Below are positions 5,253 through 56,094 of a stretch of DNA of 64,000 nucleotides, piece by piece. Both the position numbers and the translations under genes were made by a program. Source of the stretch: Octopus sinensis (Eukaryota); NCBI RefSeq assembly GCF_006345805.1, contig NC_043005.1, forward strand, positions 62,000,001 through 62,064,000, written 5' to 3'. The stretch's first letter is position 1, and every line of letters starts with the position of its first letter. A model generated the notes under the pieces. That model had not been told where the DNA came from. It did not search any database and was given only the letters and a program-made list of their open reading frames with translations.

Positions 5253-5448
5253 TCTGTAAATGTAATATGTGACAGTTATTCGGTAGCCATGATAAACCTC
5301 CGAGTTTCGGATGCTGAGGTGGAAATCCACGCCGCCCTCTCTTCAGTTATCTGGCTATCGAGATGGTGGCGTGGATTTCCACCTCGGCATCTGAAACTCA
5401 TAGGTTTATCATGGCTACCGAATAACTATCACATATTACATTTACAGA
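5253..5448. repeat. ~196-bp near-perfect palindrome between (TA)n tracts
   Basis: TCTGTAAATGTAATATGTGA...CCACGCCGCC (5253-5336) pairs with GGTGGCGTGG...TCACATATTACATTTACAGA (5365-5448) with few mismatches. Confidence 0.92.
5281..5360 (-). ncRNA. Type I hammerhead-like motif (imperfect)
   Basis: Minus strand: TAGCCA-GATAA CTGAAGA [stem II region with GTGG/CCAC hairpin] GAAA CTCGGAGGT TTATC-A-TGGCTA. Both core motifs and an extended stem I are present; the cleavage-triplet register is ambiguous. Confidence 0.5.
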
Positions 5449-5683
5449 TATATATATATATATGATGGGTTCTTTCAGTTTCCACCTAACATATTCACTC
5501 ACAAGGTTTTGGTCAGCCTGAGGCTAAAATAGAAGACTCTTGTACAAAGTGTCATGCAGTGAGACTGAACTTAGAACCACGATGTTGAGGAGCAAGCTTC
5601 TTATCACACAGCCACCCCTGCATCTATAATCATTAATTTTCATATTTCTTTTGCTTACATTGTTCATAATTATTTCCATTCAC

Positions 5684-12620: not shown

Positions 12621-12899
12621 GGAAACTACTATCAAATTATAGATCTAGCATCATTGTTGACACCACTTAAGGCACCAAAGAAATGTGATAGCTTAAACCA
12701 GGTGCTTACCAAGGAATGGTCTCTCTAACAGATTTCCGCATAGTTACCATAAGACTTTACTCAACCCGAAGCTATGGTTGAAGATATTTGCTTGAAGTGC
12801 TGCACAGTGAGACTGAATTTAAAATTACCTAGGTTCAAGGCTAGCTTTTTGACCACATGCCATGGCTCTATCTATCTCACGTTTCAATTCCTGCTGGGT

Positions 12900-13150
12900 G
12901 CAGGAATTGAAACTTTGTTTGGCTAGGGTTTCAATTCTTGCACTATGCCACATAACATGTCTTCTTTAGCAAGATACTTCAATTCGTGTTGCTTCAGTCA
13001 ACTAAGCTGAAAATGAATAAAAGCAACAGCTTGTACAGGTTATCCCTGCAACAGACTGGTGCCCCATTCAGAAGAGTATCTTCTACTTTCATTTACTCAA
13101 ATGCTATGAAAGCTGGGATAAACTCTGGACTAATGAACCTGTAAGCTTCA
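12900..13150 (+). mobile_element. Old CORE-type SINE remnant
   Basis: Degenerate CTTTAGCAAGATACTT core followed by CCCTGCAACAGACTGG...CTGGGATAAACTCTGG, resembling a widespread SINE central domain (recognised from memory). Confidence 0.45.
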
Positions 13151-13614
13151 AACTGACAGTCATGGTGGAATGAAAACATGGTCATGAAGTCAGCTTTGCA
13201 ACTACATGATTTTAAGTTCAATCTTACTGTGCAACTCTTCAGATGAATGTCTTCAACCATAGTCTTAGGTTGACCAATATCATACAAGAACTATGCGGAA
13301 GTCTGTTAGGGAGATCATTCCTTAATTGTGTTTACTGTTGTCATATTTGCCAATAATAAATGGCTGTCAGTCAGTTTTAGCGATGAGTATTCGGTTGTTC
13401 AGTCAACTGAGATACCTGCATATTGAATTAGCATGGGAGTCAGAGAGTGGGTATTCTACAGTCATGTGTATACTTTACATAATCTTCAGGTAGAATCAGT
13501 GTTATACAGTGCATGACAAAACCAATCCCTTTGAATAACAAGTTCATCTGACCAGCTTCCACATAATTCCATCTACCCAATTTTACTCACAAGGTTTGTG
13601 TTAATCCACAACTA

Positions 13615-13999: not shown

Positions 14000-14653
14000 T
14001 ACTATAAAAGACAAAAGACATTCACCCAAAATAAAATGCTGAGGGATCATGCCTGGTACCTCATGATTGTGAAGCAAACTTCTTAACCATTCAGCTATAC
14101 TATAGCCAATAGTAAACACACACACATACACACACACACAGATTATAATTTTTCTTTCAATTCTTTATTAATTAATTAATTAATTAATTAATTAATTAAT
14201 TAATTAATTGGTTTTATTATATGCATCAAAGTATTTTATCACACCTCTGTGACTTGCTCATAGATAGATACATCAAAGAGAATAAAAGTATGAAAAGCAA
14301 AAACTGAACTTGTTGAAAGACTACATTGGTGTAGAAGAAAAAAATTAAAACATTTACGAGCCAACATGGAGGCCTCTACATGGTCATTTGAGTATCCAGA
14401 AATAGGAGTCAAATCTTCCAATCTCTTTACTGAGTTAAAAAAGAAAAAGACACAAATACCCTAGAAAGATACATATCCACAAAAGATGGTATGGTCACAG
14501 CAGGAATGACTTTGATCACAGATCTACTTCGTCACTGCATACTTGGGTCTAAACAACAACAGTTAAAGACTCTATTCATAGATACTAATAGACAGATTGC
14601 ATTGTGAGATGAAAGATTTTGATATAAATCATCATCATCATTGTTTTAATATC

Positions 14654-14886
14654 TATTTCTTTACCACCCTCAAGGTGCTAAACACAGAGAGGACAAACGA
14701 GGATAGACAAATGGATTAAGTCGATTCTATCGACCCCAGTGCGTAACTGGTACTTATTTAATCGACCCCGAAAGGATGAAAGGCAAAGTCGACCTCGGTG
14801 GAATTTGAACTCAGAACATAGCGGCAGACGAAATACTGCTAAGCATTTTGCCTGGCGTGCTAACGTTTCTGCCAGCTTGCTGCCTT
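14654..14886 (-). mobile_element. SINE family C
   Basis: Reverse complement of the 15552-15772 copy. Confidence 0.85.
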
Positions 14887-15551: not shown

Positions 15552-15772
15552 AAGGTGGTGAGCTGGCAGAAATGTTAGCACTCCGGGCGAAATGCTTAGC
15601 AGTATTTTGTCTGCTGCTATGTTCTGAGTTCAAATTCCGCCGAGGTCGACTTTGCCTTTTGAGGTCGATTAAATAAGTACCAGTTACGCACTGGTGTCAA
15701 TATAATCGACTTAATCCGTTTGTCCTTGTTTGACCCCTCTGTGTGTAGCCTCTTGTGGGCAGTAAAGAAATA
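15552..15772 (+). mobile_element. SINE family C
   Basis: AGCTGGCAGAAATGTTAGC...TTCTGAGTTCAAATTCCGCCGAGGTCGAC...TTGTGGGCAGTAAAGAAATA. Confidence 0.85.
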
Positions 15773-31280: not shown

Positions 31281-34134
31281 ACACAAGATTTGTGTATGTG
31301 TCTATATATCTTAAAGATCTGAAAGGGATCTGTTTTGCTTTTTAAAACTATTTCTCTGTTTAAGCACTGTTGATTTACAGAGATGTTTTAAGCATAGTTT
31401 CTCAAACTCTTTTCTCTTTTTTCTGTTTTTACCTTTCAAAAAGATTCATTACTGCTAAGTTAGCCATGACTAAGTATATATTATATTTAGCTAATTTTCC
31501 GCACAAGATCAGTGAGATGTAAACTTCTTTGGAGGGATGATGAAGTTTGAAAATATTCAGCTTTAATTATGTCCTTTGTTATTTTTTCTTGATTAACATT
31601 TTCAAGGTTGTTAACTTAGAATAGAACTGATTAAAAAAAAAAAAAAAAAAAAATAGTTTGGTATTTTTTTGTTTATTTTATTTTATTTTGGCACCAATTA
31701 ATTTGAGTGAAAAATATTCGTTTGGGCTTTTATATTTTGGATATTTCTTTTCTGAAGTAAGTGAAAAAATATTCTTTATAAACATCACACATTCGCACAT
31801 ACACGTGAACACATAAATATATATGTGCACACTCACACACACACACACATATGCACACACACTCACACACTCTTGCAGTTAATTGTATATGTGTGTTTGT
31901 GTATTTGTCCTTTGATGGAAAGCCTTACAAATGAGATCCCTTGAGATATTTATTCTGCATCAAGTTAAAGATACTCTGCTGTTACTGACATCATCAAAAA
32001 TGCAGTGAATCAGTAAGTCATCCATTGGAGACCTGTAACTAACAATCATTCATCATCATCACCAAATTGAAGGAAGATCTCTAATGACACAATACAATTA
32101 TCAAACTATATAGTTATGACACTGAAGGAGTATTTCCAATGACTCATTTGAGTTTTCAAGCTAAACATGCATTCTAGGTTTGGTGTTGCTCTTACAGAAA
32201 AGCATAAATGTCACAGAATCTTGCTTATATTTCCCTAAAATATAGAGAAATAGGACCTTTGTGTTTTGACAGTCATGTATTTTTTGTGCCAATGATATAG
32301 CCATTATATGGTCACTCATTCTGGCGGAAATAGCAGCCAAATCTTCTTCAAATCACCCATTTTATGTCTTCAAGAATGGAAAGACTCGTTGGATAAGTTG
32401 GACTGTGATACATGTCTGAATAAAAGTTAGAATGGTTACAGCTTGAATGCTTTTGATCATAGGTCTATTTAGTCACTGGTGACCTAGAGGGGCTAAATAA
32501 AAACAACAACAACAAAACCTATGTGAGAGTAATTATATGGTTGCTCAACCTGCTAGAACTAGCAGCCAAATCTTCAACTCACACCATGTCATCTTAAGGT
32601 AAAAATGGTCACTTTGAATAATGGTTTCGAATTTTGCACAAGGCCAGCAATTTCAAGGGTAGGGCTTTAGTTGATTACATGAACCCTAATACATTGGGCT
32701 GGTACTTTATCTTATTAAGCCTGAAAAGATGAAAGGCAAAGCTGTTCCTGACAAGATCTGAACTGAGAATGTAAAGAAAATTTCACGAAGCATTTTGTTT
32801 GGTGAGCTAATGATTCTGCCAAGATGGAATGGTCATAGCTGGAATGTTTTTTGATCATAAGTCTACTCAGTCTATACATTGAACCCAATGTGTGGAGCAC
32901 TTTAGGCAAATGACTTTTATCATGGACAATGCCTAGTGAGTGGAATTTGGTAGGTGGAAACTATGCAGAAGCTTTTCACTAATACATGCATGCACACACA
33001 CACACACACACACAATTAGAAGGTAAAGCTTATTGAATTATAACTGAATTTCACATTACTGGACATTCAGATGATTAAAGTAAGGAAGCAGCAAGATTTA
33101 TGAGCAAAAATATTTGTAGACACATCAAAACTTGATGACTCTGAGATTTGATTGGTTGCTAAAAAGACCATTTGAAAATGCACCACACATTCATCTATTC
33201 AAGTATCATATCCAAAACACTTTACACACACACACACACACACACTCATGCACTCATGTTTACATGCCAAAAAACTGATATTCCATGTGTTCAGTATTAT
33301 ATGTGTAAAACACATAAAAGCAGCAAGGTGCTTGTTGTTAATGAAAAGTAATTGAATAATGTTTCCATATGACCGTCTTTCAGAGTATATCCAAAGTCAT
33401 AATTAAAACCTGTGTATGTATGTCTTTTGTGAAAAATATTTATGCACAGACGTGTTAGATTTCTAGAAAAATATGGGGGAAAAAACAGAAAATAAAATAA
33501 AGAAAACTGAAGTGAGATTCCTATATCCAGGATATTAGAGATATTGTAACATAAATAAGGCTACATATATAGTATATTTGTAGTACTTCCCTTAGTAGAT
33601 GCAGATACTAACAGATATTAGCAAGTGCATTTGTCAAGCAAAGCTTCAGCTGTGAGAGAGAGAGATTATAGAAATATCTTTTCTCTCTCTCAAACAAATC
33701 AACATTGCATTACTCTCTATATGCAGTTACTAACAGACATTAGCAGTAATGTATAGCTTCCAATATGTGGAAGCAATTATTAAAATATTGTTTTGTCTCT
33801 CAAACAAATCAACACATATATTTGAAAGTCAGTCAAAAGTATAAGTTAGTTATAAATGTGTTGGTACTCACCACTGATACGGAAGGAAAGAAAGTAGCAT
33901 GAAAGTGCTATTGTGAGAGGCTGCCAAATGTGGAAGAATGTATGGGATAAACAGGGGTTACTGCATGCTGACCTTACAGAGGGAGTAGCATGGTAATTAA
34001 AGTGATAAAAGGAATGAAGAAAGAAAGTTGTGAGTCGATCAAAGATAGTTGCAGAAACACTCAAAATATCTGTTGAAGTAGGATGCATGATTACAATCTG
34101 TAGAGTTGATTTAATTAAGTCATATGTTGGGGCA

Positions 34135-34498
34135 AGCGAAAGCGAAATCGAATTGAACCAGCCAGGATCACTGGTCTGGTGGTGCGTAAAAAGCACTATC
34201 CGACTCGTGGCCGATGCCAGCGCCGCCTCGACTGGCTTCCATGCCGGTGGCACATAAAATACACCAATCCGACCGTGGCCGTTGTCAGCCTCACCTGGCA
34301 CCTGTGCAGGTAGCACGTAAAAAGCACCCACTACACTCACGGAGTGGTTGGCGTTAGGAAGGGCATCCAGCTGTAGAAACATTGCCAGATAAGACTGGAG
34401 CCTGGTGCAGCCTTCTGGCTTCCCAGATCCCCAGTCGAACCGTCCAACCCATGCTAGCATGGAGAACGGACGTTAAACGATGATGATGATGATGATGA
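34135..34498 (+). mobile_element. Young RTE 3' end with (GAT)n tail
   Basis: GGCGTTAGGAAGGGCATCC...GGACGTTAAAC(GAT)n. Confidence 0.9.
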
Positions 34499-34574: not shown

Positions 34575-37317
34575 AGCAGAATTATCATAAACTGTTACAA
34601 AATCAAAGGCAGTGCCTATGAGAGAAGCAACTATAGAGAAATCAAACTGTTTGTTCAAGTTATGAAGATCACAGAGAAAGTATTAGCAGAACTAGTCTGT
34701 GACAAAGTAGAGATAGATGAAATGCAGTTTGACTTTATCCCCAGAAGAAGCACTACAGATGCAATCTTTCTAGTGAGACAACTGTGGGAGAAATGCTTGG
34801 CTAAGAATAAATTGCTCTTCCTGGTTTTCATTGATTTGGAGTTGTTTGGCACAGTACTACACTCAATAATTAGATAATCACCGAGGAAGCTAGGTGTAAA
34901 CAAATAGTTTGTGAGGGCTGTAGGTAAGAAAGAAGACAAGATCTTGGTACCTTCAGGAAAATGGCCATACATGATGTTGGGAAAAGGAGTAAGTAAAACT
35001 CTATACATTGAACCCAATGTGTGGAGCACTTTAGGCAAATGACTTTTATCATGGACAATGCCTAGCGAGTGGAATTTGGTAGGTGGAAACTATGCAGAAG
35101 CTTTTCACTAATACATGCACACACACACACACACACACAATTAGAAGGTAAAGCTTATTGAATTATAACTGAATTTTACATTACTGGACATTCAGATGAT
35201 TAAAGTAAGGCAGCAGCAAGATTTATGAGCAAAAATATTTGTAGACACATCAAAACTTGATGACTCTGAGATTTGATTGGTTGCTAAAAAAAAACATTTG
35301 AAAATACACCACACATTCATCTATTCAAGCATCATATCCAAAACACTTTACACACACACTCATGCACTCATGTTTACGTGCCAAAAAACTGGTATTCCAT
35401 GTGTTCAGTATTATATGTGTAAAACACATAAAAGCAGCAAGGTGCTTGTTGTTAATGAAAAGTAATTGAATAATGTTTCCATATGACCGTCTTTCAGAGT
35501 ATATCCAAATTCACAGAATAGAATAAATATGCTATTTTATCCAAATTGTGAAAATTCTCATCAGATGTTGTACTTTTCTGTGAGATAAATATTACAGCCA
35601 TTAATATAGAGGGACATGTGTTTTATCAGTTTTATAATTGTTCATATCACTACCTTTTAACCTCTCAATATATTTAGATGGTGATGTATCTTTTTCAGGC
35701 TTACCTACCTACTTATGCATGTAAAGGCTGGATATGGTGGTCTCTGCAAAAGAAACTTTCATGATTCAATGGAGGGAGAGGAGGCTGCAGCAATTCATTC
35801 TGGAGTGCAGGGAGCCAAATGAAGCAAGTAAGCCATTTTGGTCATCTACTGTATTTGTCTCCATCCATTGTTATTTTCATCAGGTCTGGCCACTGGATTG
35901 AATATGATCATACATGAAGGAGTGAAACTGACAGTGTACAACTCTTCCTCAGTTAAAAAAAAAAAAAAAAGCCACCACATAAGTTATGAGTCATTGTCAA
36001 GGATGACTAAATGATCCTTACCACTCTGACTGATGAGCATGATACCTATATATAGAAGACATGACAATATTTACATATCTTTGAATGTGAGTGGATGTAT
36101 ACATTATGGGTTCTGCATATGATAATTGAATTGATGAATGTGTGTTACATTCCGAAATGTTTGTTGACAACCATTCAAATCTCAATGATTTATGATATTT
36201 TGATGTGTTTATGAATTACTTATATATTGTCACACTGTTTCCCTAATATAATGGTTGGAATAATCTGAAACATGAATGTAATTGTTACAACTTAGGACCC
36301 TTTAACTTCAAATAAATTAAACAAGCTTTAATTCATATGCTGAGCACTTTTTTTGTAAGCACAAATCTAAGCAATACATTTTAAAATGTGTACGATATGC
36401 TATCAATATTGCTGACATCAAGTTTACAAATCCCTCAAGGCTGAGCCTCTATGTAGCATATGTATATAACAAAAATCAAATTGATTCTATTTCAATTTTG
36501 ATTCTCATAGAAACTGATGTATTCACTTTTATATTCTATTATATTATATAATTTCTCTAAGCCTTACGTTTATGAACAAAAATACAAATATATATATATG
36601 TGTATGTGTAATATATATATATATATTATTCAAAGGAATTCCAACTCTGTCTATTTTCTTTAATGTTTTATTTATATTCTTTATCATATTAATGTAGAGT
36701 ATAGAATATATAGTATAAATAGTATATATAGTAAAATGGAATGAAGTATTGTTTTATTGAATAGATGAAATATTGAATATCAAATATTAAGGGACTGTAA
36801 TATAGTCCCTTAATATCAAATATTCAGGGGCTATATATATATATGCTTCTGGCCAACATATCTGATGAGTTGTCTATATTGCCAAGAGCAATAGTAGACA
36901 CAAAACCAATGGTGACTTTGTGAATGACTATATGACATAACCAACCATCACAAAAAATATACTATTTAACTGCATAAAAGTACAACTGCTCAAAATATTT
37001 TTCGAACTTATGGACAACTGACTGTGTGTGTGCGTGTTATATTCATCATCATAATAATCATTGATTATTATATTTTAAATATTATTGAAGATATATACTC
37101 CTTCAATCCTTATGTGGTGATATAATGACATCTGTACAATGGCTATATACACATTTTAATACAACCATTGTTGGAGAAATTGAATGTCTTTCATGTGGAA
37201 GATAAACTCTAATGATAAAGTATTTATAGAATGTAGAGAAGTCACTGGAATGGTTTCCCACTGGCTTATCCTATTCTATCAGTAGTCTTTAACTCAGTAC
37301 TGTTAATTTGACAGTGT

Positions 37318-38227: not shown

Positions 38228-38583
38228 CATCATCGTCATCATCATCATCGTTTAACGTCCGTTCTCCATGCTAGCATGGGTTGGACGGTTCGACCGGGGA
38301 TCTGGGAAGCCAGAAGGCTGCACCAGGCTCCGGTCTTATCTGGCAATGTTTCTACAGCTGGATGCCCTTCCTAACGCCAACCACTCCGTGAGTGTAGTGG
38401 GTGCTTTTTACGTGCCACCTGCACTGGTGCCAGGCGAGGCTGGCATCGGCCACGGTCGGATTGGTGCATTTTACGTGCCACCTGCACGGAAGCCAGTCGA
38501 GGCGGCACTGGCATTGGCCACGGTCGGATTGGTGCATTTTACGTGCCACCGATATGGAAGCCAGTCGACGCGGCGCTGGCGCA
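38228..38583 (-). mobile_element. RTE 3' end fragment with internal repeats
   Basis: (CAT)n tail, conserved 3' UTR and about 3 VNTR units. Confidence 0.9.
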
Positions 38584-39809
38584 TCAGATTATTTTGTCCA
38601 GTGCATTAGAAATTCTGCCAGGGTTTATACTTTATCTTTTTGATATTGGTTTCAAATTTTTTGGCACAAGGCCAACAAGTTTGGGGTAGGAAGAAAGCCA
38701 ATTACATCAATAGCAGTGCTTGATTGGTACTCATATTATTGACTCCTAGAAGATGAAAGGCAAAGTCGACCTTGGCAGAATTTGAACTCAGAATGTGAAG
38801 ATGGATGAAGTGCTGCTCCAAGTATTTTACCTGGTTTGCTAACAATTCTGCCAGCTCACCGCTGTTTGCTTTCTCTCATCATTGATATTGGCAGGATGAA
38901 AGGTTAAAGTGACCTTGTTGAGATTTGAATTCAGAACATAAAATGCTGGCACAAATACAACAAGACATTTTGTTTGAGTCTTTAACAATTCTGCCAATCG
39001 ACCATCATTATTGAAGCATGACATCATAATTGGAATTACTTGAAAGTTGTAACTTCATAGAATAAAATAATTGCTTTATATTACATTGAACACTGCGATT
39101 TGACACTATGCTGACTCAGCCATCTGCAGCTGCAGCCTGTTCACCATAAATGCTGTGTCATAATATCATTGATGATATAACTGTAATAAAATGAAGGATT
39201 TACTGGATATTTAAAAATTGCTATTCAACATCTCAATGAACTTTCTTGTTGAAAGAATTGAGTGGTCATATACTGAATGAATGAATCACTCTTATGGAGA
39301 GAGAGAGCGAGAGAGAGAGAGAAGGGAGTGTGACAGACAGATAAACAGAGGTGAAAGAGAGAACTATGGATAGCAGAATCAATAGAGTGATTGACAAAAA
39401 GCCTTGGAGTATTTAGTCATTTCCCTTCATGCTCTCCGTTCAAATCTGGTTAAATTCAACTTTGACTTTCTTACTTCCAGAGTTGATAAAATTAATTAGG
39501 TGCCATTTAATTGAATGCTTCCCCTCTCCCACAAAATTGTGGCTTTGTGTGTCTATGCTAGAAATTTATTACTTTTAGAGAGTTGGGTGGTTTGGTAGTT
39601 ATGGTAAACGCTTCAGTCTAAATGCCTTCCAGCAGTTAATCTTGACCTATGTTCTGCCAGGTTTAATTTTACTATTCACTGTTTTAGACTTTATGTTATA
39701 AATATCAGTAATATAATGAGGATTGATTCAAATAGCTGAGTACAGTACTGGCTGGGAGGTTGAAATATTCACTTTGAAACTGTACGGTTCTAGGTTTGAT
39801 TCTGCTTCT

Positions 39810-40533: not shown

Positions 40534-40567
<34 letters not shown>

Positions 40568-40729
40568 AATATAAATATAAATAATGATGGTGATATATTG
40601 AATATTAACTTAATTTAATTAACATTCAATTTAAAACCAGTAGCCTAGCATATAGAAAAATCTGAAAATTCAGAAAAATTGTAATACATGCATATAATAA
40701 AATGCGTATAATAAGAGATGACCACTAAG

Positions 40730-41305
40730 TGGACATCCAATATGCTAGAAGAAGATCATCTACGATCTAACTACAAAGAAAAGAATGTTCTCTAGAGAAA
40801 TTCAGCAAACACCAGAACAAAAGCGGGTAAGACAGATGAAAAATCATAATTGGAATTACTTGAAAGTTGTTACTTCATAGAATAAAATAATTTCTTTATA
40901 TTACATTGAACACTGCGATTTGACACTATGCTGACTCAGCCATCTGCAGCTGCAGCCTGTTCACCATAAATGCTGTGTCATAATATCATTGATGACATAA
41001 CTGTAATAAAATGAAGGATTTACTGGATATTTAAAAATTGCTATTCAACATCTCAATGAACTTTCTTGTTGAAAGAATTGAATCACTCTTATGGAGAGAG
41101 AGAGCGAGAGAGAGAGAGAAGGGAGTGTGACAGACAGATAAACAGAGGTGAAAGAGAGAACTATGGATAGCAGAATCAATAGAGTGATTGACAAAAAGCC
41201 TTGGAGTATTTAGTCATTTCCCTTCATGCTCTCCATTCAAATCTGGTTATACAAAATACAGAATTTAAATCGTAGATGATCTTCTTCTAGCATATTGGAT
41301 GTCCA
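40730..41305. repeat. Perfect 37-bp inverted repeats enclosing the second duplication copy
   Basis: TGGACATCCAATATGCTAGAAGAAGATCATCTACGAT at 40730-40766 and its reverse complement at 41269-41305. Confidence 0.93.
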
Positions 41306-41314
41306 ATTATACGC

Positions 41315-41358
<44 letters not shown>

Positions 41359-41774: not shown

Positions 41775-41809
<35 letters not shown>

Positions 41810-41812
<3 letters not shown>

Positions 41813-42891
41813 TGGTGACAAAAGGCCTCTCGCACAGAGTGAAAGGCAGACTGTATGATGCGTGTGTACGAACAGCCATGCTACATGGCAGTGAAACATG
41901 GGCCGTGACTGCTGAGGATATGCGTAAGCTCGCTAGAAATGAAGCCAGTATGCTCCGATGGATGTGTAATGCCGGTACTCACACTCGGCAGAGTGTAAGT
42001 ACCTTGAGAGAAAAGCTGGACCTAAGAAGCATCAGTTGTGGTGTGCAAGAGAGACGTTTGCGCTGGTATGGTCATGTGGCGAGAATGGATGAAGATAGTT
42101 GTGTGAAAAAGTGCCACACCCTAGCGGTTGAGGGAACCTGTGGAAGAGGCAGACCCAGGAAAACCTGGGACGAGGTGGTGAAGCACGACCTTCGAACTTT
42201 AGGTCTCACTGAGGAAATGACTAGAGACCGAGACCTCTGGAAGTGTGCTGTGCGCGAGAAGACCCGGCAGGACAAGTGAGTCCACAACCCGTGGCCTTCT
42301 ACATGGGATGGAGCCAGCCTACGTATGCATACCTTCCCTTCTTGGGACACAAAACTCTACTTGTGAAGACGTGTTGAGGCAAGTGAGGATCAGAATCGAA
42401 ATCGATCAATGGAAATTGCGGATGTGCTACCAGTGCCGGTGGCATGTCGAAACTCTGCTTGTGAAGACCCATTGAGGCAAGTGAGGATCAGAATCGAAAT
42501 CGATCAATGGAAATCGATCAATGGAAATTGCAGATGTGTTACCAGTGCCGGTGGCATGTAAGAGAACTTTCCGTTTCGCGACCGTTGCCAGCACCGCCCC
42601 GTTTCGTGTCCGTTGCCAGCCTCGCCTGGCCCTCGTGCCGGTGGCACATAAAAAGCACCATCCGTTCGTGGCCGTTTGCCAGCTCTGTCTGGCACCAGTG
42701 CGGGTGGCACGTAAAAAGCACCCACTACACTCACGGAGTGGTTGGTGTTAGGAAGGGCATCCAGCCGTAGAAACACTGCCAGATTTGACTGGGCCTGATG
42801 AAGCCTTCTGGCTTCACAGGCCCCAGTAGAACCGTCCAACCCATGCTAGCATGGAAAACGGACGCTAAATGATGATGATGATGATGATGAT
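41810..42891 (+). mobile_element. 5'-truncated RTE LINE (ORF C-terminus + 3' UTR + (GAT)n tail)
   Basis: Open ORF 41809-42279 (GRLYDACVRTAMLHGSETW...GRGRPRKTW), highly similar to 21297-21920. Confidence 0.93.
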
Positions 42892-42897
42892 ATATAT

Positions 42898-43402
42898 CAT
42901 CATCATCATCATTTAACGTTCGCTTTCCATGCTAGCATGGGTTGGACGGTTCAACTGGGGTCTGGGGAGCCCGAAGGCTGCACCAGGCCAGTCAGATCTG
43001 GCAGTGTTTCTACAGCTGGATGCCCTTCCTAACGCCAACCACTCCGAGAGTGTAGTGGGTGATTTTATGTGCCACCGACACAGGTGCCAGACGAGGCTGG
43101 TGAACGGCCATGCTCGGATGGTGTTTTTTTTCATGTGCCACCGACACAGGTGCCAGACGAGGCTGGCAGACGGCCACGCTCGGATGGTGTTTTTATGTGC
43201 CAGATGAGGCTGGCGAACGGCCATGATCGGATGGTGTTTGTTACGTGCCCACAGCACGGAGGCCAGTCGATGTGTTACTGGCTACGGCCACGTTCGGATG
43301 GTTTTCTTGTGTGCCACCGGCACTGGTACCACAAGGATACAAATTCCATTGATGTTCATCTATTTTGATTTGTTTTGATTTGATTTGATTTGATTTTGAT
43401 TT

Positions 43403-46509: not shown

Positions 46510-46950
46510 ATCTCGTATTGCTGGGCAAAATACTTAGTGGTATTTCATCCATATTTACATTCTGAGTTCAAAAGTTGTCAAGGTTGACTTTTCCTTTCAT
46601 CCTTTTGGGGTTGATGAAATAAGTACCAGTTGAATGCTGGGGTTTATGTAACCGACTTACTTCCACCCTCCCCTGAAATTACTGACATTGTGCTAAAATT
46701 TGAAATCATCATTACTATCATTATTATCATCATTAAGGCAGCAAGCTGGCAGAATTGTTAGCACACTGGGAAAAATGCTGAGCAGCATTTCATCCATCCA
46801 TATGTTCTGAGTTCGAATTCTGCTAAGGTTGACTTTGCCTTTCATCCTTTTGGGGTCAATAGAATAAGTACCTGTGGAGCACTGGGGTCGATGTAATCAA
46901 CTGTCCCCTCCCTCAAATTTCAAGCTTTGTGCCTACAGTAGAAAGAATTA
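46510..46950 (+). mobile_element. Two adjacent SINE family C copies
   Basis: TTCTGAGTTC...GTTGACTTT..CTTTCATCCTTT cores at ~46560 and ~46805. Confidence 0.75.
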
Positions 46951-47529
46951 TTATTATTGTTATTTGATGATAATGATGATGATCATCATCATCTTCATTA
47001 TTTAACTTCTGCTTTCCATGCTGGCATGGGTCAGATGGTTTGACAGTAGCTAGTGAGCTGGAGGACTGAGCCAAGCTCTACTGTCTGTTTTGGCATGATT
47101 TCTACAGCTCAATGCTATTCCTAATGCCAACCACTTTACAGCTTACACTGGGTTATTTTTTTCTTTTTTATGTAGCACCAGCACCATGATGGTCAGGAAT
47201 AATGATATGATAGTCACGGCTGGAATGGTTTTGATCAAAGATCTACTCAGTCAAGACTGACTCAGGGTTAAACCCAAACAACAAAAGTAAAGGGCATGAT
47301 ATTTTGTCCCACCTAAATCAGTAAGAAGGTCCTTAAAAATTATTTGAAGCATTTCTGAAATGATTAAACAGCAAATACTATTGTTTAAATTATAACACAA
47401 GCAAATCAAAATACCAAGTTTCTGGTAATTGACCCTCACATCAGCCCTTAACCCCTCCACCAGAAGACAGAGATGGGGCCTCTTTGTGGTTGCTTGGCTT
47501 TTTCAAAGTCTTTCTTTTTTACCGTTTAG

Positions 47530-49545: not shown

Positions 49546-50818
49546 TTAGGTTGTTCCGAAAATAATAGCTGATTCCAGAAACAATTTTATTCTGGAGAAA
49601 TTAACAATAGATATGTTTTGATTAGTCAAAGTATGAGCCATGAACATCTATACATCTCTGCCATCAATCAACGAGATTATTTATGCCTCATTGATGAAAA
49701 CTTATTGGTTTTGATGCTAAGAAATCTTTGAAAGATGATTCCACCTCTGGTTTGGACCTGAAAGTTTTATCACTTAAAAACGTGTTTAAATGCTTTAAAA
49801 AATGGTAATCAGTGGTGAAATATTAGGAGAATATGGAAGATGTAGTAAAGTCTCGAATCCCAAGTCTGTGAGTTTCTGCAGCATCATTCTTGCAACATGT
49901 GGCTTTACATTATCGTGAAGCAGAATTGGGCCACACTGATTCACCAATGCAGGCTTCATTTTTTGAAAGTGAGCATGCATTTCAGTGAATTGATTGCAGT
50001 AATTCTGTAGTGCTCTGATTGGCTTCCAGAAAGCTGTAATGGACAACACCAATTGCAGACCACCAGACAGTCACCATAATCATTTGCTGATGCAACTTTG
50101 GCTTTGAGAAATGTTTGGGGGACTCATCACAATCAAGCCATTGAACAGATCATTTACAGTTATCATAAAGGATCCACTTTTCACCACAAGTGACTATTCT
50201 GTCAAGAAAAGGATCGTTGATGTTTCACAGAAAGAGCATTGAGTACACTTCAGAAAGCCAAACTTTTTGATTTTCTTTGAGCTCATGCAGTACCCATTTA
50301 TTGAGCTTTTTCACCTTACTAATCTTCTGCAGATTGCATGAGACCATTTCGATACTGACACCAAGTGCCTGAGACATTTCTCTAATACTTTGACATGGGT
50401 TTTGTGTAACAATTGCTTTCAATTGTTCATTGTCAAGACTGCATGACCATCCTCTATCTTCTTCATCATCAAGGCTCTCATCACCACTATGGAATTTCTG
50501 ACACCACTTTCGTACTGTGTGATCACTTGTGGACCCTTCTCCCCATGCTCTGTTGATATTGGCAGCAGTTTGGGAGGCATTGTGCCCAAGCTTGAACTCC
50601 TGAAAGAAAAGTAAGCGGTCTTTTTTTGTCATGTTTATAATTAAGGGTGCCTATGCTTCAAGAATGTTTTCTGTCTGAATTAAGTAGAAAATTATTAAAG
50701 AACATACATCAATTATTAAGTATGTCAAAATTCACCAAAAATATAATTAAAATACTATGATAAAAGTGTGTTTCAAAACACAACACTTAGAGCAGCTATT
50801 ATTTTCAGAACAACCTAA
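49546..50818 (-). mobile_element. Full-length decayed mariner transposon (Hsmar/SETMAR-like)
   Basis: TA|TTAGGTTGTTCCGAAAATAATAGCTG versus CAGCTATTATTTTCAGAACAACCTAA|TA: TIRs match 25/26. Confidence 0.93.
49700..50632 (-). pseudogene. Mariner transposase pseudogene
   Basis: FKLGHNASQTAANIN, KWVLHEL, IVTCGEKW (first catalytic D changed to G), LLHDNVKPH and PYSPNISP. Confidence 0.9.
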
Positions 50819-53020: not shown

Positions 53021-54489
53021 CTCATATAAAAGCAAAAAAATCCCTTATCTTTTATCTTTTACTTGTTTCAGTCATTGGATTGCAGTCATGCTTTGGACCC
53101 TACCATCAAGGGTTCTGTCAAATAAATCAATGCCAGCACTTATTTTTTTAAAAACCTGGTACTTGTTCTATCAATCTTTCAGAACTGCTAAATTTAAAGG
53201 GATGTAAATAAACCAGCACTAGTTGGCAAGTATGGTGGTAAGGAACAAACACACACACACACCATCTGTAAGTGATACAGTAAAAGATATGCAAGACTTT
53301 CCTCAAATTTAAAATATGAATTTGCTTTTGTTATCCATATTCCAATGATGGAGCTTTGCATCTTTGTTAACCAGTTTCTTCCTCACAGGAAGATTTCAAA
53401 TAATTAAAAATAGATGAGAACATACAGGCATACATTCATGTATAATCCATCCATCCATCCATTTATCCATCCATCCATCCATCCATCCTGCCATTCCACA
53501 ATGCAAGTGTAAAATGGAGAGAATATTGGTTTTCTTGTAGAATAGTCACAACTGCTTTTATTCTTAGGATGAGAGAACTGGAAAGCTATGAAATCCATGA
53601 CATTTTCACTGGTACTAATGGCATAAATCGCTTTAGATGGAAATGGATCTTACCTTCTGCTATAAGACTCTCATCAAAAATTAAAAGAATACTACCAAGC
53701 AAATAAAGAATTTGCTGATTTTTCACAACATTACTCTTGTATTCTCTTTGTGAAGTTCATACATCCAAATACGTATGTGTTTGCACGCACACATGTGTGT
53801 GTGTATGTATGTGTGTGCATACAGTTATAGGTGCAAACGTAGTTGTGTAGTTAAAAGTTTGCTTCTTTACAGCAATGATTTGGTTTTAGCTTCAATGCAT
53901 GGCACTTTGGCTGAGTGTCGTTTTACTATAGCTCTGTGCTATGCTGCCCTGTTCCTTGTGAGGGTATTTGTTAGACTGAAGCTGCAAGCTTATTAAGTAC
54001 ACATGTGTAACCAAAATATTATTGCAAAAGGGAAAAATCAAATATAATGTGAAGTTTGAATGAAGATGATACATCGTAAAAATGAATGAGTGAAGAGCAA
54101 TTAGTTATGAAGATGGCCATTTATTTAGTTGGTTATAATTTTGTTACAGTATAAAATAAAAACGATGTTGTTGCATTGTTTGTTCATGTATATACATGAT
54201 GGTGGGTTGTTGCAGTAAAATTTTTTCAGATTCCATGGATTCTTTATGTGTGGGAGCTAGCTCAATTGTCAGTTGCTAGAGAGGAAAAAAAAAAAGAATG
54301 AGATTTGTATTATCAGGCATGGTTGCATGGTCAGTAGCTTGCTTACCAACCACATGGTTCCAGGTTCAGTCCCATTGTGTGGCACTTTGGGCAAGTGTCT
54401 TCACTATAGCTTTGGGCCAACCAAAGCCTTGTGAGTGGATTTGGTAGACAGAAACTAAAAGAAGCCCATCGTATATATATATATATATA

Positions 54490-55087
54490 ACTATAAACTA
54501 GGGTATCTGAGAGATACCACCATGCTGAAATAGCAGTCAAAACCCTGACCCTAAAGCCACTTTGAATGTTCATATAGCATTAGGAGAGAAAACAGAGACA
54601 AAATAAACTAGCAAAAAAAGATTTTTCTGGATAATTCAAGATCCTGTATTTCTGGCTTTGCCTCAGAGAAGCTCTGCCTTCTTCAGTTGAATATACCAGA
54701 TAAGCACATAAATACAGATATATATATATATACCATCCGAGCGTGGCCGTCCGCCAGCCTCGTCTAGCACCTGTGTCGGTGACACATAAGAAAACACCAT
54801 CCGAGCGTGGCCGTCTGCCAGCCTCGTCTGGCACCTGTGTCGGTGGCACATAAAAAACACCATCCGAGCGTGGCCGTCTGCCAGCCTCGTCTGGCACCTA
54901 TGTCGGTGGCACATAAAATCACCCACTACACTCTCGGAGTGGTTGGCGTTAGGAAGGGCATCCAGCTGTAGAAACACTGCCACATCTGACTGGCCTGGTG
55001 CAGCCTTCGGGCTTCCCAGACCCCAGTTGAACCGTCCAACCCATGCTAGCATGGAAAGCGGACGTTAAACGATGATGATGATGATGA

Positions 55088-55135
<48 letters not shown>

Positions 55136-55315
55136 CATACGTTATACTTACATATACGAATGCTCATACATACATATATATGCACGTATGTACAAGGGCA
55201 GCTTAAGTTGCCTGCCAAACAGCTCCAAAGTGCTAACATTTAAAGTGGCTTTAGGGTCAAGGTTTTGACTGCTATTTCAGCATAGTGGTATCTCTCAGAT
55301 ACCTTAATTTATAGT
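54490..55315. repeat. ~85-bp inverted repeats (54490-54580, 55222-55315)
   Basis: GGTATCTGAGAGATACCAC(C/T)ATGCTGAAATAGCAGTCAAAACC(C/T)TGACCCTAAAGCCACTTT occurs on opposite strands. Confidence 0.92.
54733..55090 (+). mobile_element. Young RTE 3' end with ~52-bp internal repeats
   Basis: CCATCCGAGCGTGGCCGTC...GGCACATAA repeated 3-4 times, then the conserved 3' end and (GAT)n. Confidence 0.9.
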
Positions 55316-55496
55316 TTTAAAAAAAATATTACCTTTGTATGGAATTTATTCCCATGTTGGCCACTTGATAAGATCGATATTTAAATATCGATATTATCCT
55401 TATTCATAAATTTATATATATATGTTTATATATATATAATTAATAGTAGGAAATATATTGTTTAATTATTATATCTTCATTTATTTTATATTATTT

Positions 55497-55758: not shown

Positions 55759-56094
55759 TACAGAGATGTACTTGCATAGCGAGTGAGCTGATCTGAGATT
55801 GTGTGCTGAAGCAGTTACAGAGTGGAAGGTGTTTATAAGCCATTTAAAAACACACAAAAACTGTTAGATTCACTTCAACCTTTTAATTTAATTTGCCAAA
55901 ATATTTTCATCAGTTTGAGACCGCAATCTGATCACTGGCAAAATTCCGTACAGCATGGAATTTTGTCTAATCAGGATCTCGGTCTCAAAGCGACAAAAAT
56001 ATTTTGGCAAATTAAATTTAAATGTTGAAGTGAATCTAACAGTTTTTGTGTGTTTTTAAATGGCTTATTAACACCTTCCATGCTGCAATTGTTT
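55758..56094. mobile_element. Foldback / palindromic MITE-like element between microsatellites
   Basis: 55823-56080 is a ~258-bp near-perfect palindrome centred at ~55952. Confidence 0.85.

Follow-up and report, generated by a model that had tools for sequence, protein, structure and literature searches.

The 64-kb stretch of DNA analyzed here, which we refer to as the window, is AT-rich octopod nuclear DNA (GC about 0.36) with many SINEs and LINEs, in which LINE reverse-transcriptase ORFs, mariner-like ORFs and microsatellites are abundant. No host exon was recognizable among its ORFs of at least 70 aa, and scans of the window against Rfam and for tRNAs gave zero matches. The locus described here consists of a copy of a neighboring segment, enclosed by two inverted arms and situated beside the (TA)n tail of a SINE. 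Its features, together with other inverted repeats that were compared with it, are listed in Table 1.

Table 1. Features of the locus and of comparable inverted repeats. Positions are those of the window unless another sequence is named.
Feature	Position	Strand	Description
Donor (original) segment	39023..39452	+	Defined by alignment and nhmmer
Imperfect TA/TAAA tract	40534..40584	.	Preceded by (TG)n
AT-rich unique sequence between left TA tract and left arm	40586..40698	.	No other copy in the searched DNA
Left arm	40699..40770	+	11-nt piece, 17-bp stretch absent from the right arm, then 45 nt
Spacer between left arm and copy, 72 bp	40771..40842	.	Unique in the window
Captured copy of the donor	40843..41249	+	407 bp, defined by alignment; junction with the spacer at 40842/40843
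15 nt (TACAAAATACAGAAT) between copy and right arm	41250..41264	.	No template found
Right arm	41265..41318	-	Reverse complement of the left arm minus 17 bp; directly abuts (TA)19
Perfect (TA)19	41318..41355	.	Identified by TRF; touches the right arm
Old tRNA-derived SINE body	41357..~41510	-	Multi-copy repeat in the window
Inverted repeat A	5253-5333 / 5368-5448		81 nt, 94%; near-perfect hairpin, 34-bp loop
Inverted repeat B	54489-54570 / 55235-55316		82 nt, 94%; 664-bp spacer
Inverted repeat C	55823-55906 / 55997-56080		84 nt, 96%; hairpin, 90-bp loop
O. vulgaris near-perfect palindrome, ~310 bp	14018-14329 (region 14018-14340) of the OX597824.1 20-kb locus		

The octopus DNA used for comparison amounted to 84 kb, i.e., the 64-kb window and 20 kb of the Octopus vulgaris chromosome OX597824.1, to which repeats of the window are 85-98% identical. 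The closest named relatives of the LINE 3' ORF at 41809-42279 are from O. vulgaris and O. bimaculoides (69-85% identity over partial length), and paralogous LINE copies were obtained with this ORF from O. vulgaris OX597824.1 and from the ENA contig ERZ22665968:k127_13032110. A search with a reverse-transcriptase ORF of the window gave relatives at 50-60% identity, the few named ones being non-octopus, and the ORFs at 41809-42279, 50225-50632 and 33846-34460 are themselves absent from the recorded proteins. The ENA contig, which is filed as metagenomic, is 89-91% identical to window repeats, and a protein labelled as belonging to a Herbaspirillum metagenome-assembled genome (P0049) is 79% identical to octopus LINE reverse transcriptase. 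Judged by these identities, both look like animal (octopod-like) DNA within microbial or metagenome records.

The donor segment (430 bp) and the captured copy (407 bp), which the earlier note had described as near-identical, match in direct orientation. The alignment contains four substitutions, at copy positions 40871, 40893, 40996 and 41235, and a single 23-bp gap in the copy, whose placement is ambiguous by 3 nt (TGA microhomology). Outside this gap the identity is 99%, and the length ratio 407/430 corresponds to 95%. The two segments lie 1.8 kb apart in cis, with the donor upstream, and no other repeat pair of the window exceeds 96% identity. Beyond the duplicated segment the flanks of donor and copy lack similarity in the alignment, and inspection of this alignment revealed 0-2 nt of microhomology at both ends of the copy. 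Another direct duplicate in the window, 32871-33399 / 35000-35513, is ~530 bp long, with 94.9% identity and 2.1 kb between its members.

The composition of the donor reveals the direction of copying. It consists of about 343 bp of unique DNA, including a (GA)n run, and ~87 bp from the start of a tRNA-type SINE, which lies on the plus strand and runs on to ~39573. When the region 39360-39600 was used as an nhmmer query against the window, at least 10 other SINE copies aligned unbroken over ~39366-39573, and hence across the breakpoint at 39452 (for example 46746-46953, 11158-10979, 14875-14745 and 1457-1605), whereas the alignment of the captured copy ended at 41252. Because position 39452 cuts a multi-copy SINE that continues beyond the breakpoint, 39023-39452 is the parent and 40843-41249 is derived from it, and the location of this boundary within a SINE also means that the captured piece is an arbitrary local chunk rather than a repeat unit. 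Such arbitrary boundaries rule out the second insertion of a mobile 430-bp unit. The wider proposal that the segment is itself a mobile repeat inserted twice, or that unequal recombination or segmental duplication produced the second copy, gains something from the SINE fragments that crowd the region, but it seems to us extremely improbable, given that the right end cuts a SINE mid-way and that just two copies exist in the window, having neither a tail, nor a target-site duplication, nor similar flanks.

The donor locus is not free of transposable elements within its flanking 100 bp: its right end lies inside the SINE and its left end abuts SINE-head units. Tandem repeats occur directly upstream: a 68-bp unit is present three times in succession (38369-38567), and a SINE-head unit of 143 bp twice (38733-39018). 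The first 110 nt of the donor were considered as a third tandem SINE-head unit, and this assignment was dropped in view of a merely weak similarity.

The arms contain a perfect 37-nt inverted repeat (40730-40766 / 41269-41305), which extends to 45 nt at 96% identity (40726-40770 / 41265-41309). Further out, beyond a 17-bp indel in the left arm, the repeat continues with the 11-nt sequence ATGCGTATAAT (40699-40709), whose partner is 41308-41318; the left arm also bears a 14-bp tandem duplication (ATGCATATAATAAA/ATGCGTATAATAAG, at 40688-40714). The 37-mer is the longest perfect inverted repeat of the window other than microsatellites when arms up to 1.5 kb apart are considered, and chance is not a credible explanation for it. 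Arm identity is 48/48; counted over 60 nt, the arms show 3 differences, versus 4 in 407 nt for the captured copy (Fisher P = 0.05). The similarity decays at the inner ends, with two mismatches in the last 8 nt and an indel in one arm, a pattern that looks like that of older transposon terminal repeats or of an older palindrome, as opposed to that of a copy made in one step.

The arms were placed by nhmmer at these two sites only in the window, and none is found beside the donor. Together with the AT-rich left part (40586-40842, GC 0.30) they are single-copy across the window, the ENA contig and the 20 kb of O. vulgaris. Exact searches with an arm 30-mer and an arm 24-mer gave 0 matches in metagenome contigs, viral contigs and prokaryote genomes, none of which is an octopus genome. 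A concatenated query of six-frame peptides, made from the donor, the arms and the left part, gave nothing in the protein database, and a literature search for the arm strings found none. The region 40586-40698 is probably ordinary local (host) DNA. The arms are separated by 494 bp, 407 bp of which are the captured copy. The 72-bp piece to the left of this copy presumably represents the left part of the spacer, or loop, of an original hairpin. The 15 nt to its right (TACAAAATACAGAAT) recur nowhere else in the window when up to 2 mismatches are allowed, and comparison by eye with 40772-40786 in direct orientation gives 12 matching positions out of 15; they are either the right-hand end of the original spacer or filler made without a template.

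The (TA)19 tract that adjoins the right arm is followed by a SINE body whose reverse complement has A-box-like and B-box-like pol III motifs at its 5' end (seen by eye in the consensus). A (CA/TG)n(TA)n tract is present at this end in each of the ten other copies of the SINE in the window, from which it follows that (TA)19 is the SINE's own 3' tail. This SINE has diverged to 66.5% identity with the consensus derived from its copies in the window, as against 48/48 for the arms and 99% for the copy, and the event is therefore much younger than the SINE and its tail. The imperfect tract on the left is possibly the remaining half of this SINE's tail, or else a separate microsatellite. The left arm starts 113 bp to the right of that tract, and the arms are thus not the two ends of a (TA)n-flanked block. 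If they are taken as termini, TA occurs on both sides (TA-CATGC...GCATG-TA); this match is uninformative as a target-site duplication, since the right flank is (TA)19 itself. At the (TA)n/arm junction there is microhomology of up to 4 nt (ATAC). In these respects the description given in the earlier note proved accurate: the perfect 37-bp inverted repeat is present, as are the additional 11-bp match outside an indel, the (TA)n on both sides and a donor without arms. Farther to the right, a 5'-truncated LINE 3' end (41775-42400), which includes the ORF mentioned above, starts directly at a perfect (AT)18 (41775-41810); here, too, a repeat junction coincides with a TA microsatellite.

An RNA intermediate was also considered, for example through template jumping or twin priming by a LINE reverse transcriptase during retrotransposition into (TA)n. 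SINEs of this genome do end in (TA)n and use each other's tails as insertion sites (tail-to-tail pair at 42614-43168), and LINE reverse transcriptases are present in the window. However, the region 40586-41318 has no retroelement sequence, no tail and no target-site duplication, the captured piece would be an implausible transcript unit, and the adjoining SINE is far older than the event; we regard an RNA-mediated capture as highly improbable. Neither a tail nor a target-site duplication was found around 40843-41249 specifically. LINE/SINE 3' transduction and retrocopying were rejected because no copy of the arms or of the left part lies beside the donor and because the copy lacks a tail and a duplication. 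Helitron capture was discarded as well, since neither orientation of 40586-41318 has 5'-TC...CTRR-3' termini, and inspection of the flanks by eye led us to reject the end and duplication patterns of hAT (8-bp duplication), piggyBac (TTAA) and PIF (TWA) elements.

The window was scanned for young inverted repeats of at least 35 nt and at least 85% identity with arms up to 2 kb apart. Six structures were obtained, namely two SINE pairs and four repeats with arms that are unique in the window, the locus described above being one of these four. In repeat A, the right arm is in contact with the (TA)n tail of a SINE on the minus strand (5467-5613); on the left, at a distance of 41 bp, there is another (TA)n. 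In repeat B, it is the left arm that makes contact, with the (TA)n tail of a SINE that lies on the plus strand and ends near 54467, and the 664-bp spacer contains another SINE-like repeat copy with its own microsatellites. Repeat C has a (TG)n(TA)n run at a distance of 20 bp and, on its other side, (TA)n at 66 bp. Thus, an outer end touches a dinucleotide tract in three of the four unique-arm repeats (A, B and the main locus; permutation P = 8e-4), and in all three this tract is a 3' tail belonging to one and the same SINE family. The adjoining SINE bodies at A and B are older than the arms, because they are 82% and 89% identical to the consensus, respectively, versus 94% between the arms. Target-site duplications of 2, 3, 4 or 8 bp were looked for at A, B and C, and none was found.

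In the 20 kb of O. vulgaris, the near-perfect palindrome is the only repeat of this kind; it is in contact with (AT)n(TG)n at its right end, nothing in the window is related to it in sequence, and its flanks show a possible 7/8 match, TATATAT[G/A]. Altogether, the five structures have five unrelated arm sequences, four of them touch a TA tract and three are plainly without target-site duplications. As far as these sequences allow a judgment, and bearing in mind that the sample is small, the local making of inverted copies at TA tracts would fit better than five transposon families. Older long-arm inverted repeats are also present in the window (12711-13323 and 35245-36208). An inverted pair of tRNA-type SINEs (14654-14877 / 15561-15772), 683 bp apart, is 85% identical over 224 bp, its best stretches reaching 93-95%. 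In a SINE-like pair at 42614-43168 the two members are joined tail-to-tail at (GAT)n(AT)n(ATC)n, an arrangement suggesting that the tail microsatellite of one retroposon served as the insertion site of the other.

These additional repeats also bear on whether the locus is an artefact of assembly, in which a chimeric or mis-joined consensus at (TA)n would have generated a false duplicate and a false inverted piece. The bounding (TA)n tracts are indeed hard to assemble. However, the copy differs from the donor by the four substitutions and the 23-bp gap and is not just the same consensus repeated, the junctions of the small mosaic are sharp, and similar repeats occur at four other places, one of them in the independent chromosome assembly of O. 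vulgaris. We consider an artefact quite improbable.

On balance, we lean toward reading the locus as the scar of error-prone break repair or of template switching during replication, formed without an active mobile element. According to this proposal, a break would have occurred in or beside the spacer of an inverted-repeat, and hence hairpin-forming, structure adjoining the (TA)19 tail. Copying synthesis repairing this break would have left its proper template, copied the 430 bp located 1.8 kb upstream while slipping over 23 bp, and then joined back. The arms themselves would most likely be a local fold-back duplicate of 40699-40770, i.e., one generated by an inverted template switch, and they may have formed at the fragile (TA)n tract either together with the capture or shortly before it. 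Of the 476 bp between 40843 and 41318, all but 15 nt are templated within 1.8 kb, as one direct piece and one inverted piece, and the template of the inverted piece (54 nt) lies 495-620 bp to the left. The 23-bp skip at a 3-nt microhomology would fit slippage-prone copying of low processivity. The weak microhomology at the junctions (0-2 nt), the untemplated 15 nt at 41250-41264 and the decay at the inner ends of the arms count against the template-switch reading.

Two variants of this scenario can be envisaged. If everything happened in a single step, the left part would have been invaded, in inverted orientation, by a 3' end from the margin of the (TA)n tail, with ATAC being common to the junction; about 57 nt would have been copied and 17 skipped before a switch to the upstream donor, of which 430 nt would have been copied with 23 skipped at the TGA microhomology, and the final join would have been made at 40842. 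If it happened in two steps, a hairpin resembling A or C would have formed first, with a spacer of ~87 bp (40771-40842 plus 41250-41264), and this spacer would later have broken and been filled from the nearby donor. We slightly prefer the two-step variant because it accounts for the 15-nt piece and for the slightly higher divergence of the arms.

The earlier note had attributed the capture to template switching or transduction during the insertion of a mobile element with a long arm and a short inverted arm. Template switching is retained as the most likely route, in the sense of local copying at the DNA level; transduction is not, as no arms lie beside the donor. The insertion of such an element is without support: the arms are single-copy in the DNA that was searched, the left arm lies more than 110 bp inside the supposed element, the sole possible target-site duplication is a trivial TA, and the (TA)n on the right is the 3' tail of the older SINE and not part of an element.

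A more specific role for a transposon has to be weighed separately. Tan et al. 2021 (Nat Commun 12:4280, PMC8277862) described 370 animal Pack-TIRs, in which host DNA lies between the terminal repeats of a transposon. In a strict form of this explanation, the arms would be the terminal inverted repeats (TIRs) of a small non-autonomous, TA-targeting, Tc1/mariner-like transposon of ~200-250 bp that inserted in the (TA)n tail of the SINE, and a later internal break would have been filled with nearby DNA, independently of transposition. The architecture agrees with the published definition of 100-5000 bp of non-TE DNA between inverted ends and a unique nearby parent of at least 90% identity (PMC8277862). 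Moreover, TA can be placed on either side of CATGC...GCATG, the inner arm ends decay as transposon terminal repeats do, the two spacer pieces (72 and 15 bp) would represent the interior of the transposon, and the window contains mariner-like ORFs and the two older long-arm inverted repeats. On the other hand, neither the window nor the 20 kb of O. vulgaris contains a further copy of the arms, and the metagenome, viral, prokaryote and protein collections gave zero arm matches, although a family of low or moderate copy number could be missed in 84 kb of octopus DNA. A TA flank says nothing within a TA tract, the analogous repeats A, B and C have no target-site duplication, and the five inverted repeats are all unrelated in sequence. 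We therefore judge this explanation unlikely, although it is the origin of the arms, as transposon ends or, as we would rather think, as local fold-back copies, that constitutes the main uncertainty.

The locus represents one more case of a known mutational outcome, one that is neutral and situated in octopus DNA that is rich in repeats and non-coding; its value is that of a clean and very young example with both junctions intact. The recurrence of unique inverted repeats at (TA)n tracts is a more interesting lead than the single locus. We tentatively raise the idea, of which we remain somewhat doubtful, that the (TA)n tails of octopus SINEs are hot spots of strand switching during replication or repair that make new hairpins out of ordinary local DNA, which then break and take up nearby sequence. 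If true, such hot spots would provide a transposon-independent route to MITE-like and Pack-TIR-like structures, at about one per 15-20 kb sampled. Should the association with (TA)n hold genome-wide, it would have implications for the origin of hairpin and MITE-like structures in cephalopods, for the way in which fragile AT microsatellites reshape cephalopod genomes, and for repeat annotators, which would mislabel such structures as DNA transposons.

Several known systems resemble the locus in part. It shares with MITEs of the Tc1/mariner type a length of a few hundred bp, inverted ends and a TA-rich site. It differs from them in that there is no second copy in the 84 kb of octopus DNA, a sample far too small to exclude a family, and in that there is no informative target-site duplication, the sister repeats A, B and C likewise lacking a TA duplication. 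Abortive gap repair, which leaves filler DNA, is known in internally deleted DNA transposons such as maize Ac/Ds and Drosophila P elements. The likeness here is that the ends are kept while the interior is replaced by nearby sequence through template switching; the difference is that abortive gap repair needs an excising transposon, whereas no transposase-related family is tied to the octopus arms.

The similarity to Pack-TIRs is more extensive. Tan et al. concluded that single-copy Pack-TIRs arise by transposition-independent filling of gaps at internal breaks, and they found the parents to be mostly less than 5 kb away in cis and the median junction microhomology to be 2 bp (PMC8277862). Likewise, the octopus locus contains a few hundred bp of host DNA between inverted arms, has a unique and near-identical parent in cis less than 5 kb away, exists in no further copies in the DNA searched and shows little or no junction microhomology. 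Its 494 bp of non-TE interior between inverted flanks falls within the range of 100-5000 bp. The published criteria also ask for a unique parent with at least 90% identity and a length ratio of 80-120%, and the values found here are 99% outside the gap and 95%, with uniqueness referring to the window. Two differences should be noted. First, a Pack-TIR requires that each flank include 10 bp or more of terminal sequence from a single annotated TIR family, and the arms in PMC8277862 are accordingly annotated transposon ends, whereas the octopus arms are single-copy in all the DNA searched. Second, the 100 bp flanking the parent must be TE-free, which serves as a filter against segmental duplications; the octopus parent is flanked by SINE pieces, and the pipeline would have filtered the locus out. 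This requirement is a filter of the pipeline rather than a feature of the mechanism. The main text of PMC8277862 mentions neither octopus nor any other mollusc.

Finally, Yu et al. 2024 (NAR 53:gkae1159, PMC11724301) have shown that induced breaks in yeast give rise to fold-back inverted duplications and to templated, sometimes inverted, insertions. The octopus locus resembles such fold-back, MMBIR or FoSTeS events in having a local inverted copy beside a presumed break, together with a templated insertion from another locus, and one end that is joined with little homology. It differs in scale, the yeast pieces being mostly 5-34 bp and the octopus pieces 54-57 bp (inverted) and 407 bp (direct), and in that the octopus events are fixed in the germline and adjoin a (TA)n tract. 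By analogy, the events in yeast can be regarded as the non-transposon version of the same chemistry.
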